Shown here: positions 23,119-29,262 of the stretch, piece by piece
Layout of the letters: each line of letters opens with the position of its first letter
Position numbering within the stretch: the stretch's first letter is position 1
DNA from: Salpingoeca rosetta
Taxonomy: Eukaryota; Protista; Choanoflagellata
Length of the DNA: 64,000 bases
Direction of reading: 5' to 3'
Assembly: GCA_033442325.1 (NCBI GenBank)
Contig: JAWQFM010000014.1
Location: forward strand, 773,792-837,791
Program-made: the position numbers and the translations under genes
The notes under the pieces: model-generated
The model's input: the letters and a program-made list of their open reading frames with translations, nothing else
The model's database searches: none
What the model was told of the DNA's origin: nothing

Positions 23119-25026
23119 TCAGTTGCGGCTCTTCTTGGACTTGTTGAGGAAGTCGGAGTGCTCGACGTAGGGGTTCTTGGAGATGGCCATGTCTGCCCAC
23201 AGGTCAGGGGTCAGGTACGTGTACGTCTGGCGGATGGCCTCGAACGTTGCCTTGGCTGTTGGTGGTGATGAAAAAAAGGACAAGGGAGCAAAGGAGAGGG
23301 GGGAGAAACCACGCAGAGAGCGAGCGAGTTGGTTCGTGAGTTGCATGGCGCACAAGTGCATGAAAGTTGAAGACAACGCAGAAAGCAGATGATGCAGACA
23401 ACAACACCACGGAAGAAAGAGAAAGAAGCAAGAAGAGAGAGAGAGAAAACACATGCTTGTGTGGACAGCAGTTCTCAGTAGACTGTCGTGAGAACTTGAA
23501 AGCTCATCACAAAAGCACAACTTTGTCGTGCATGAGATCAGAGAGTTGGGTTAAAGATTTGATATCATCCCAGAACTGCGACCACAGCACAAGTGAAGAA
23601 AAGCGAGAGAGAGAGAGAGAGAGAAACACCAACAAGAACGAGCAACGAGAGACGACGAGCAAAGGCCGCCAAGCATGCATGGTACGTGGCGAGGGGAAGT
23701 CAAGGGGAAACAAATACACATCAGAAAGATACAACAGCAACAAAAAAGGGCGCGTGTGCGACGAGAGCTACTGTTCTCAGTAGACTGTCGTGAGTTGGAA
23801 AGATACTCATCACAGGGTGCAACTTTGTTGCGATAAATCAGAATGAGTTGGGTTAAAATTTGGTCATCATCCCCGAAGAGAGCCCAAATCACACACACAA
23901 CATGAAGAGAGAGAGAGAGAGAAGGGGGGGGGGGAGGAGGAAAAACAAAAGGGGAAAGCAGAGACGGAAGAGACGGGATCAGACACAAGAGAAGAGGAGG
24001 ACACTGCTATTTCTCAGTAGACTGTCGTGAGAACTTGAAAGCTCATCACAAAAGCACAACTTTGTCGTGCATGAGATCAGAGAGTTGGGTTAAAGATTTG
24101 ATATCATCCCAGAAACAGAAGAGTCCAAATAAAAAGAAAGGAAGAGAAGAGAGAAAGAGGAGACAGGGAGAGGAAAGAGGAGAGAGGAGAAGATTGGAGA
24201 GAGAACAAGTACGTGTTGTGCTGCACAGACCCGATGCAAAGAAAGCAACAGAGCTGTTGTTGCTTCGCGTGTACATTGGGTCTTGCCTCTCACCAACAAC
24301 CAAACGCAAACACAAAACATCCAACGCAAGCGCACACGTGTGTCATTCAAAGGACGTACCAAAGTTGCCGAGGGTGGCGGTCTGGCCACGGGAAGCCGTG
24401 TAGCAGTCGTCGATACCGGCGAGCTGGAGCAGCTTCTTGGGGGTAGGGGCGGCAACAATACCGGCACCGCGAGGCGCGGGGATGAGACGCACAGTGACGC
24501 TACCGCAGACACCGGTGGTCTTCATGGGCACGGTGTGGGGATCACCAAGCATGTTACCCCAATAACCACGACGCACGGGGAGGAGGCTCATCTTGGCGCA
24601 GAGGAGGGCGCCACGGATGGCGCCGGCAACCTCCTTGGAGCACTTGACGCCGAGGCCAAGGTGACCGTTGCTGTCGCCGAGGGCAACAAAGGCCTTGAAG
24701 CGGGTGCGCTGACCAGCGGTGGTCTGCTTCTGCACGGGGGTGATCTTGAGGACCTCGTCCTGCAGAGAGTCGCCGAAGAAGAAGTCGATGATCTCGGGCT
24801 CCTTGATGGACAGGGAGTGCTGGTAGATCTCCTCGATGGACTTGATGCGGCGCTCCTTGACGAGGCGGCCCAGCTTGGTCACGGGCTTCCACTCCTTGCG
24901 CTCCTCGCGGCCACGGCCACCACCACGGCCACCACCACGACCGCCACCACGGCCACGGCCCTCGCCACCACGGCCCTCGCCGCGGCCGCGACCACTGCTT
25001 TCACCGGTCGGTTGCTTGTCCGCCAT
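23119..25026 (-). CDS. RPS2: 40S ribosomal protein S2 (uS5); exons 25026-24360 and 23255-23119
   Basis: RGG-rich N-terminus, [56 protein letters not shown] intron 24359-23256 joins TLGNF|[18 protein letters not shown] in frame. Confidence 0.97.
23468..23579 (-). ncRNA. Box C/D snoRNA copy A (dual guide; snR73/SNORD35-type D guide, snR69-type D' guide)
   Basis: Sense strand: box C GGATGA, D' CTGA, C' GTGATGA, D CTGA, and an 8-bp terminal stem GCAGTTCT/AGAACTGC. Guides TCTCACGACAGTCTA and AACCCAACTC are antisense to the conserved LSU stretch GAGCUGGGUUUAGACCGUCGUGAGA. Confidence 0.9.
23773..23878 (-). ncRNA. Box C/D snoRNA copy B (diverged; snR73/SNORD35-type D guide, snR71/SNORD29-type D' guide)
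   Basis: Box C ATGATGA; D' guide AACCCAACTCATT followed by CTGA; internal hairpin GCAAC-AAA-GTTGC; C' GTGATGA; D guide CTCACGACAGTCTA followed by CTGA. Confidence 0.9.
24010..24115 (-). ncRNA. Box C/D snoRNA copy C (identical to copy A from box C to box D)
   Basis: Exact ~104-nt duplicate of 23472-23575 with unrelated flanks; terminal stem TTTCT/AGAAA. Confidence 0.9.
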
Positions 25027-26212: not shown

Positions 26213-28535
26213 GCTGTTGTTGGTGCTGCTGTTGGTGCTGGTGCTGCTGGTGCTGCTGCTGTTGTTGTTGTTGTTGTTGGTTTGGAACAGCAAAGACGTC
26301 TGCCGGCCGCGCGTGCATGTCCTCCCCAAAGAGCGAGGCGTACAGCCCAGGCGAGTATGAGCTCACATACCGTTCCGTCCATGCCATCAGCTTCGGGCCG
26401 GTTCGCGGCGCCTGCGTTTCGTCGACCCAAGCAAACAGGTGTGCGACACGAAGGTAAGACGACAGAGCGTGCAACAATAGCAAAAAAAAAAACCCCCGGA
26501 GACAACAAACAGTAAGGCATCAATCAGCTCGGCGAATCAGATGGGTCGGGAGCAAGGGGATATTGGACAGAATACAATACAAAGACGGCACGCACACACA
26601 CTCAGAGACACGGAGACAGACATACACACACACACATAGACCCCCCCCCCACACACACATATACACCACGCGTCGCACCTGGAAGACGCCCTTGCTGGAC
26701 ATGAGGAGAAGGATGATCTTGAGGGACTCGCGAACAACATCCTCGTGGCCGTTCTCGTACAGCGCAAGAAACGTCTGCACAACCTGCGCCCAAATCTCGT
26801 GGAAGCGATCAAGCTCGCACAGCTGCGACAGCCGCTGCCGGAACACACGGCTTAGCTGGGAACCATACGTGTCACGCAGCTCCGCCAGCGCGCGGGGGCG
26901 AATCGTGCGCAGCGTCGTGTCGTTAAGGCGCTGCAACAGCGGGATCATTACGTGCTCAATCAGATGGCCCCAGTGCTCGGGCTGCAGGTGGTCGGCGAGA
27001 TGCGGGTCGCAGCACGCCTGGTGGAAGGCGTCCCTCGCCTCTTGTCGTACGCGCGTGTTCCAGCTCACGCACAGGTCCGCCAGCACCTTCATCAGGTTCT
27101 CCAGCGCATCCGTCCACAGCCGATCGGCGTCCACTGCCACTTCTCCTGCTGCTCTTCTTCTTGCGGCCTCTGCACCTGTTGCCTCGTCAGCATCGCCATG
27201 GGCACCGCCACCACCACCACTACCGTGACGTGGGTAGATGGTCCACACGGATCGGAACGCGGTGACGGCGACGGTGAGCAACGCATGCCCAACGGCATCC
27301 TCCATCTCGGCCTCGTCCCCCGTGTCGTGCACGCCGCGTGGCAGCACAGGTTTCGTGCGCGCCTCGGCGAGGGCAAGCAGCGTGCGGCCCAGTCCAGGCG
27401 CGTTGGGCCATGTCAGCTTGCCTGCAATTTGCAACAGCGTGTCAAGTGCAAGCTCGTTTGCCTCGTCCGAACCGCCGCAGCTCTCCAGCAGGTAGAACAC
27501 GACGCCCCACGCGTGCTGGTCGTCCATGTACGCGCCCCGCGTCTGCACCACATCGTACAGCCCGCGCGCAATCTGCTTGAGAGCGCCCGGCGACGCGTCC
27601 ACGCCGCACAGCACAGACAGCACGTCAATTGGCGAGGGTGATAGGGTGCCGCGCTGCGGCAAAAAGTGGAACACCAGGCGAATCACGCACACGGCCGTGC
27701 GCTCGGCCAGGTACGACGCGTGCACACCGGGCTCCTTCCAGTACTGCAGTGCCTCTGTGAAGTGCTGCACCACATCGTGCCACACACAGTCCACGCGGGC
27801 ATGGTTGTAGATGACCACGTTCGTCAGCATCTCCAAGAAGAACACCGCCGCATCCTGCGTGTACGAGAACTTGGGCAGCGTTTTCGGCAGTAGCCGCGAG
27901 CGCGAATGCACACCGTTAGTATGGCCGTGACTATTAGTGCTGCTGTTGTTGTTGTTGCTGCTGCTGCTGCTGCTGGTGGTGGTGGTATTATCACCGCCAC
28001 GGGTTTGCTTCGTGCTGCTGGCTTGATCAGCAGCATTGCTGCCACCACTGTCGTCGTTGCTGCCGTCCACGGGTGCATGAACCGCTGCATCGGCAGACTG
28101 CGAGCGCTCGGCCACCACGTTTGCTTGCACGGCGCTGCGACCCGTCCGCTCGCCACTGCCTGCTGTTGTTGCCGCTGCCGCTGCCGCTGCTGTTGTTGCA
28201 TTGTCGTCCCCAGCGAGTGACGGCGGAGGGCTCGGCGTGTTGCCGTCGCTGGTGGGCGTGATGGCCGTGACGGGACCAGCAGCAGTCATGAACGTGGTGG
28301 TGGTCGTTGCTGCTGGTGCTGGTGTATTGTCATCACTTGTTGCCGCTGCTGTGGTTGAGGCTGACGGTGTGGTGTTGGTGATTGTGCTGGCGCTGCCATT
28401 GGCGCCCCCCTCCTCTGTCTTGCCTGCAGGTGGTGGTGGTGGTGGTGGGACGTTGACCTTGTCGGTGCTGGCGTGCAGCGACGACGGACACGACACCGTG
28501 GAGACAGCGTCTGCGTTCTTGCTGTCAGCATCGTC

Positions 28536-28566
<31 letters not shown>

Positions 28567-29262
28567 GCAGCAGCACCGCCGTTCTCGTGCGCGCGCAGGC
28601 CCTCTTCGCGGTGCTGTGGGCTGCGGGCACAGAACGCCAGCAGCCGCACGACACTGCGCAGCTTTTCCCGCGAGAGGAATGTGGTGGACTCAAACAGGCG
28701 GTCCAGGCGTGTGCCCTCCAGCGCCTGCCGCGCTTCGTCGCACAGCTGCTGCAGCGGCGACGCCTCCTTCTGCGCGGGCGCAGACGCAAACAGGGCCGAG
28801 AAATAAGTCAGCACGGACGTGTCCGCGCGCGTGTCCTTGGGCGCGGTGGGCGACTCAAAGTAGCGCACACGCCCGCCCTCCTGCACAAAGTCGAACAGCG
28901 TCCGCAGCCCCGCTGGCAGCAGCCTGTGCCTGGCAACAGCCTGCAGCAGCACCATGGTGGCCGACCAGCCCTCGTCCATCGTGTCGCCGTACTTGATGCA
29001 CAGGTCAATCACGCACGACAGACACAGCTGGGCCTTTGTGTCGTTGGCAATGGCCTGCATCAGCGCCTTGCCGTTGACGCGATCGGTGAGGTCGAGCAGG
29101 AATGTGCGCTTGCCGAGCGTCTGCACGACGTGGTCGATGGTGTCGGAGCTGCCAAACCGGCTGCACAGGCTGCCCAGCAGCAGATAGCCCTCCATCACCT
29201 GCTTCAGTACCTTCTGCTCACACATGTGCATGTGGCCAGGCAGAGCGAGAGAGGCACGGTGA

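Follow-up and report, generated by a model that had tools for sequence, protein, structure and literature searches.

Three paralogous box C/D snoRNAs in a single uS5/RPS2 intron of Salpingoeca rosetta and the plausible re-aiming of one guide by a 2-nt insertion

In Dictyostelium discoideum, CD15, a small nucleolar RNA (snoRNA) of the box C/D type (Rfam RF01566, 'DdR16'), is a double guide for nucleotides C3292 and C3281 of the 26S ribosomal RNA (rRNA), 11 nucleotides (nt) apart, and the 2'-O-methylated nucleotides Am3279, Cm3281 and Cm3292, which correspond to yeast positions 2946, 2948 and 2959, have all been detected in this organism by RiboMeth-seq (PMC8817022). In yeast and human the same target nucleotides are served by separate, single-function snoRNAs, namely snR71 for Am2946, snR69 for Cm2948 and snR73 for Cm2959 in yeast, and SNORD29 (U29) for Am4493 and SNORD35 (U35) for Cm4506 in human (Table 1, PMC8817022). 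Four model species carry methylation at the C2959-equivalent site, and yeast, human, Arabidopsis and Dictyostelium all methylate A2946; Cm2948 is lacking in human and Arabidopsis (Table 1, PMC8817022). The three sites lie next to the peptidyl-transferase centre, where the ribosome has its catalytic activity. Here we analyse a 64-kb stretch of Salpingoeca rosetta DNA (hereafter, the window), in which one intron of the uS5/RPS2 gene carries three snoRNA-like units in sense orientation, copies A, B and C (23468-24118, minus strand). Their layout resembles that of CD15, which places its D' guide on the yeast-2948 equivalent (C3281) and its D guide on the 2959 equivalent (C3292). All rRNA positions below are given in yeast numbering.

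We assign a probability of roughly 55% to the reading that these three paralogous intronic snoRNAs act on an rRNA of canonical sequence, on which all copies would guide Cm2959, copy B would guide Am2946, and copies A and C would be poor or inactive at 2948. The sequence-only reading of this region had described three dual-guide box C/D paralogues, and the units are indeed found, with the sequences it quoted, on the minus strand. As judged from their sequences, all three appear to be genuine, well-formed dual-guide box C/D snoRNAs, and they are probably unannotated.

The order of elements is the same in each copy: a C box, a spacer of 23-25 nt that ends in the D' guide, a CUGA, a hairpin and a UGAUGA, followed in the second half by a spacer of 25-26 nt that ends in the D guide, the D box CUGA and the terminal stem. 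Copy A (23468-23579, minus strand) is enclosed by the 5' stem GCAGUUC (23579-23573) and the 3' stem GAACUGC (23474-23468), between which lie the C box (23571-23565), the D' guide (23554-23542), the D' box (23541-23538), an internal hairpin (23531-23515), the C' box (23509-23504), the D guide (23493-23479) and the D box (23478-23475). Copy C (24007-24118, minus strand) has its 5' stem at 24118-24112, a GGGAUGA C box at 24110-24104, the D' guide at 24093-24081, the D' box at 24080-24077, an internal hairpin at 24070-24054, a UGAUGA C' box at 24048-24043, the D guide at 24032-24018, the D box at 24017-24014 and the 3' stem at 24013-24007. In the derived copy B (23771-23880, minus strand), the 5' stem (23880-23875, with 5 of 6 positions paired) precedes a GGGAUGA C box (23873-23867), the D' guide (23856-23842), the D' box (23841-23838), the C' box (23812-23807), the D guide (23794-23781), the D box (23780-23777) and the 3' stem (23776-23771). 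The 3' end of the D' guide of copy B is AUU (23844-23842), against U in A and C, and a perfect AUGAUGA (23870-23864) overlaps its GGGAUGA C box. The three copies thus share the C and D boxes (GGGAUGA, CUGA) as well as the D' CUGA and C' UGAUGA. The terminal stems of A and C are of 7 bp each and differ in sequence. The minimum-free-energy fold of copy A (z = -3.75) contains an 8-bp terminal stem and the internal hairpin, and that of copy C (z = -2.6) likewise contains a terminal stem and the internal hairpin.

The D guide reads CUCACGACAGUCUA in all copies, and the D' guide reads AACCCAACUCU in A and C and AACCCAACUCAUU, longer by 2 nt, in B, each of them followed directly by CUGA. The 18-mer formed by the D guide and its box occurs three times in the window, where 0.24 occurrences are expected with up to 3 mismatches, and the 12-mer D' core also occurs three times, with 0.21 expected; for neither motif did any shuffle reach three matches, and neither is found elsewhere in the window. 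Over 104 nt (23472-23575 versus 24011-24114), copies A and C show 100% identity, whereas copy B has diverged from them: identity between B and A/C is 26/26 in the guides, 24/25 in the boxes and 39/56 in the other segments, and the D' core is identical at 12 of 12 positions next to spacers that agree at about 70%. With such a background, the probability of 26/26 guide identity is near 1e-4, and therefore both lineages of paralogues would have retained the two antisense elements, unless these were homogenised between the lineages. Beyond these 104 nt, A and C have unrelated flanks of low complexity, and each pair of flanks provides its own 7-bp stem (GCAGUUC/GAACUGC in A, CUGUUUC/GAAAUAG in C). 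The combination of identical bodies with unlike flanks and separate stems suggests either that gene conversion was confined to the body or that a copy was made recently and new stems were then favoured by selection. Since the flanks of A, B and C have no clear homology beyond low complexity, the copies do not appear to form part of a larger tandem unit.

Target registers and duplex energies were calculated against the Rfam eukaryotic large-subunit (LSU) rRNA consensus fragment ..AACGUGAGCUGGGUUUAGACCGUCGUGAGACAGG.., which may differ from the host 28S and which reads ..AACGUGAGCUGGGUUUAGACCGUCGUGAGA.. around the yeast-2948 equivalent; the Dictyostelium 26S drawn in the supplement of PMC8817022 has the same target sequence. 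In this calculation, the D guide of all copies sets the yeast-C2959 equivalent at +5 and covers 14-15 positions (2955-2969) in LSU helix 93. The D' guide of A and C covers 2945-2954 on the 3' strand of helix 90 with position 2948 at +5, and that of B covers 2943-2954 with A2946 at +5. These are the registers that the sequence-only reading had assigned to the guides, and the yeast and human sites to which it equated them agree with Table 1 of PMC8817022.

For the D guide, the antisense element next to the box is of the expected kind (at least about 9-10 bp, with the methylated nucleotide at +5), with one A/C at +6, where the A of the guide stands opposite C2960, a C in the Rfam consensus, and the pair is not of the Watson-Crick type. 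Methylation of the 2959 equivalent by all copies is very probable. In copy B, a U at D'+5 stands opposite A2946, canonical rRNA is paired at 11 of the 12 positions, including one G-U, and the inserted bases take part in the pairing, the A with U2944 and the U with G2943. Because these inserted bases pair and A2946 is methylated in all four species named above, copy B would probably direct Am2946. The third site is another matter. The D' guide faces 2948 with an A and not a G; this base occupies +5 in copies A and C but +7 in copy B, and the Rfam consensus has C at 2948. The sequence-only reading mentions neither this A nor the one at D+6. Cavaillé and Bachellerie are said to have found, in 1998, that methylation is strongly inhibited by a mismatch at the target nucleotide. 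With A at +5, little or no methylation of 2948 would be expected from copies A and C; their register does place 2948 at +5, and the A would pair there only if the rRNA had U. We therefore regard methylation of 2948 by A and C as doubtful and mostly conditional on such a U. The sequence-only reading held that this one family covers three methylation sites; the registers are consistent with it, but the Rfam consensus, the G of a related species (see below) and the G of Dictyostelium all indicate a C target in front of the A at D'+5 of copies A and C, so coverage of the third site is doubtful.

The comparison with Dictyostelium bears directly on the A at D+6. The CD15 D guide, UCUCACGACAGUCUU followed by CUGA, agrees with that of the window in 14 of its 15 positions and likewise sets an A against C at +6; three Dictyostelium duplexes, CD23/C3292 among them, have an A/C pair at precisely this position (PMC8817022). 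The Dictyostelium site is methylated with this A in front of a canonical C, so the A at D+6 of the window needs no change in the rRNA. CD15 differs from the window copies in its D' box, AUGA, and in the G at D'+5. In addition, the Dictyostelium genes are intergenic or polycistronic, whereas those of the window lie in an RPS2 intron, and Dictyostelium has no 2-nt-shifted paralogue, A3279 being guided by the unrelated CD11. Copy B resembles the U29/snR71/CD11 class in setting A2946 at +5 and differs from it in descent: its paralogues are A, C and the 2948/2959 guide of the related species, which makes it a predicted functional analogue of U29/snR71 rather than a member of that class. A separate guide of the U29/snR71/CD11 type, antisense to ..GUGAGCUGGG.. 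with A2946 at +5, was sought in the window, where matches to its antisense core occur only at chance level.

The plant family Z161/Z228 (RF00328, clan CL00056) has in common with the window the element CUCACGAC-GUC, antisense to the C2959 equivalent. Its consensus differs in that the guide lies upstream of the first CUGA and in having G where the window has A at D+6. An Rfam match to this family at 23716-23820 (minus strand; 37 bits, E = 2e-5) was rejected as artefactual: it combines the C'-D half of copy B with an unrelated CUGA downstream in the intron, and it is attributed to the shared C2959 guide.

The ancestral state of the locus can be approached through a 3.3-kb Logan contig (L002) that carries a uS5 homologue with 85% amino-acid identity, the sole close uS5 relative found. 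Its uS5 intron (L002:898-1270, 373 nt) has the same position and phase as the intron of the window and contains a single orthologous snoRNA (L002:1003-1132) instead of three; low-complexity CT/GA-rich sequence between the copies makes up most of the extra intron length in the window. The combined two-guide pattern gave no further orthologues in the genome-contig and viral-contig collections. The D' guide of the relative, AACCCAGCUCU followed by CUGA, is of the short form and has G at +5, canonical for C2948, where the window has A. Its D guide, CUCACGACUGUCUA followed by CUGA, has U at +6 where the window has A. The hairpin of 5-7 bp that bridges D' and C' differs between A/C, B and the relative, in which it is longer. 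Both species share a C box that departs from the expected RUGAUGA by a G at position 2, GGGAUGA in the three copies of the window and AGGAUGA in the relative (L002:1008-1014), and this RGGAUGA-type box has been kept across the two species.

Because the relative's orthologue and CD15 both have the short D' form, this form is, on outgroup comparison, the ancestral one, and the AUU that replaces U in copy B is a derived 2-nt insertion. By the same comparison, the base that faces 2948 changed from G to A in the lineage of the window only, and before B and A/C separated. Position D+6 is variable (A, U, and G in plants), and pairing is probably not required there. In reconstituted Chaetomium and archaeal C/D ribonucleoproteins (RNPs), duplexes of 9-10 bp are optimal in vitro, longer ones inhibit and spacer position 1 is left unpaired (PMC7229835), and it may be speculated that such a length optimum is a reason to keep a break at +6 in a duplex of 15 bp.

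Under the reading that we favour, the snoRNAs would be freed from the spliced-out uS5/RPS2 intron and then assembled with Snu13, Nop56, Nop58 and fibrillarin. The D guide of every copy would bind helix 93 and direct Cm formation at the yeast-C2959 equivalent (the human U35 and yeast snR73 site). The ancestral D' guide, as found in A and C, in the relative and in CD15, would lie on the 3' strand of helix 90 with 2948, the snR69 site, at +5. In copy B, the 2-nt insertion beside box D' would shift +5 to the A2946 equivalent, the snR71 and U29 site, and extend the pairing. The two guides of one RNA would be used one at a time, in sequence, and not jointly, because simultaneous binding of the CD15 targets, 11 nt apart, was judged 'sterically challenging, if not impossible' (PMC8817022). 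The proposal in the sequence-only reading that both guides of one RNA bind adjacent rRNA segments thus holds insofar as the segments abut, but joint binding is disfavoured by the Dictyostelium case. Changes and switches of guide target are documented in the evolution of fungal snoRNAs (PMC5824354). As for the retargeting of copy B by a 2-nt insertion, also proposed from the sequence alone, the insertion is derived, as the short form of the relative and CD15 indicates, and it moves the register, so that an effect on methylation is plausible.

Several observations weigh against this reading. The D' duplex of A and C with canonical rRNA consists of 3 bp, a mismatch at +5 and 6 bp (-13.8 kcal/mol), that of B consists of 5 bp, a mismatch at +7 and 6 bp (-14.9 kcal/mol), and that of the relative is stronger (-20.6 kcal/mol); such interrupted duplexes fit poorly with the strict conservation of D' in both paralogue lineages. 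The terminal stem of copy B, CUCUUC/GAACAG, is weak: it contains one C-C mismatch and is absent from the minimum-free-energy fold. Moreover, nothing in Rfam matches at gathering scores: the best hits, DdR16 for all copies (32-36 bits, threshold 70) and Z161/Z228 (24-37 bits, threshold 45), all remain below threshold. The sub-threshold scores bear on the assignment to a family and not on the box C/D class, such families being short and lineage-specific.

The conservation of D' would be better explained if the LSU rRNA of the host lineage had U at 2948, and perhaps at 2960, and the A's of the guides had co-evolved with it; the duplexes would then be perfect (10, 12 and 15 bp), A and C would guide Um at 2948 and the three sites would be covered. 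We consider this explanation unlikely, yet it accounts for several features at once. Both odd guide bases are A, as complements a C-to-U transition in the rRNA, the D' element is conserved at 12 of 12 positions between diverged paralogues as expected of a working guide, and U at 2948 and 2960 would strengthen the duplexes to -18.1 (A/C) and -19.2 (B) kcal/mol for D' and to -25.7 kcal/mol for D. The G at +5 of the relative would, in addition, accept a U as G-U. An rRNA of this kind exists in nature: the exact 25-mer complementary to the guides was found on one contig of a metagenome collection (L001), an AT-rich eukaryotic LSU rDNA, in which the region 280-470 (rRNA sense on the minus strand) has U at the 2948 and 2960 equivalents and A at 2943, the latter pairing with the inserted U of copy B, and the 2948 and 2943 substitutions have compensating counterparts in the 5' strand of helix 90. 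As a compensated variant of a near-invariant stretch beside the peptidyl-transferase centre, with a single exact match in the collection, L001 suggests that an rRNA with U at 2948 and 2960 is viable but rare. On the other side, the Rfam eukaryotic consensus has C at both positions, in the metagenome collection the exact variant occurs on that one contig only, the A at D+6 coexists with a canonical C in Dictyostelium, and the U of the relative at D+6 cannot suit the same rRNA as the A of the window.

The 64-kb window contains no rDNA according to an Rfam search. When L001:310-382 was searched against sequencing runs, only other organisms were among the matches listed, which is uninformative on the host, and nothing in four DNA runs of the organism of the window aligned to L001:290-420, which is no proof of absence. 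We take a canonical C at the 2948 equivalent of the host to be likely, since the consensus is near-invariant, A/C pairs are tolerated in Dictyostelium, and the relative's U and the window's A at D+6 could not fit one and the same rRNA. A U at 2948 has a distinctly smaller chance, and it is considered because it would give the best account of the perfect D' conservation and of duplexes that are otherwise perfect. The whole scenario, in which the host-lineage 28S changed from C to U at 2948 and 2960, the guides followed by G-to-A changes, one paralogue was re-aimed by a 2-nt insertion and three neighbouring methylations came to depend on one intronic family, is more unlikely still.

It could also be argued that only the D guide, at C2959, is catalytic, so that the D' elements would be accessory or competing pairings or remnants of a lost Cm2948 function, the insertion in copy B would be neutral and the copies would be dosage duplicates. 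The absence of Cm2948 from human and Arabidopsis (PMC8817022) does indicate that this function is commonly lost, its loss would look like a G-to-A change at D'+5, the D' duplexes are mismatched with canonical rRNA, and Am2946 normally has its own snoRNA of the U29/snR71/CD11 type, which may exist elsewhere in the genome. Decay of D' is nevertheless at odds with a core that has remained identical at 12 of 12 positions amid spacers at about 70%, the bases inserted in copy B are compatible with pairing to the rRNA (A-U, U-G), and the position that they bring to +5 is methylated in all four species compared. These facts make the D-only explanation improbable. That the copies are unexpressed pseudogenes, or guides for an RNA other than the LSU rRNA, has very little probability, because, although the Rfam scores below gathering thresholds would fit it, all three copies have intact boxes, stems and guides, as does a same-intron orthologue of another species, and the complementarity to a deeply conserved methylation site extends over 14-15 nt.

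The host gene was delimited by translation on the minus strand. The large 5' exon of uS5/RPS2 (24360-25026) runs from the ATG to ..TATLGNF plus G, and its best database matches are uS5 proteins with the Pfam families Ribosomal_S5 and S5_C. The intron that hosts the three snoRNAs (23256-24359; 1104 nt, GT..AG, phase 1) has the donor G/GUACGU and the acceptor ACAG/CC, and the last exon (23119-23255), which includes the stop codon, continues the uS5 reading frame after it. The exons translate cleanly into a sequence that matches uS5 proteins, the closest being animal and fungal sequences, which would agree with a holozoan or opisthokont protist. The N-terminus of uS5 (24900-25026, minus strand) is an RG/RGG repeat tract that is visible in the DNA as a family of direct repeats. 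Elsewhere in the window, an open reading frame (ORF) of 903 amino acids starting with ATG (26520-29231, minus strand) gave, for the candidates scored from a database of 5.8 billion proteins, no homologue at E <= 1e-10, and five further long ORFs are without a Pfam family.

The dual-guide design for 2948 and 2959 is not new, as it is already present in Dictyostelium CD15. What is new is the locus as such, the triplication inside a single RPS2 intron, the 2-nt re-aiming towards a neighbouring conserved site, and the A at the 2948-facing position. The DdR16 match and the Dictyostelium literature would point to a deep ancestry of the 2948 and 2959 dual guide if the resemblance is one of descent and not one forced by the common rRNA target. 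The locus is a natural experiment, with three paralogues in one intron, one informative 2-nt shift beside box D' and an outgroup that fixes the ancestral state. Should the A at D'+5 stand opposite a C, the locus tests the tolerance of mismatches at or beside the target nucleotide; if the rRNA has instead changed from C to U at 2948 and 2960, it would be a case of guide-target co-evolution plus retargeting by insertion. In general terms, this is tidy but fairly ordinary evolution of guide RNAs, and the picture of the box C/D RNP is unchanged by it. If copy B does guide Am2946, it would be a textbook case of how a small insertion can give a guide a new specificity.

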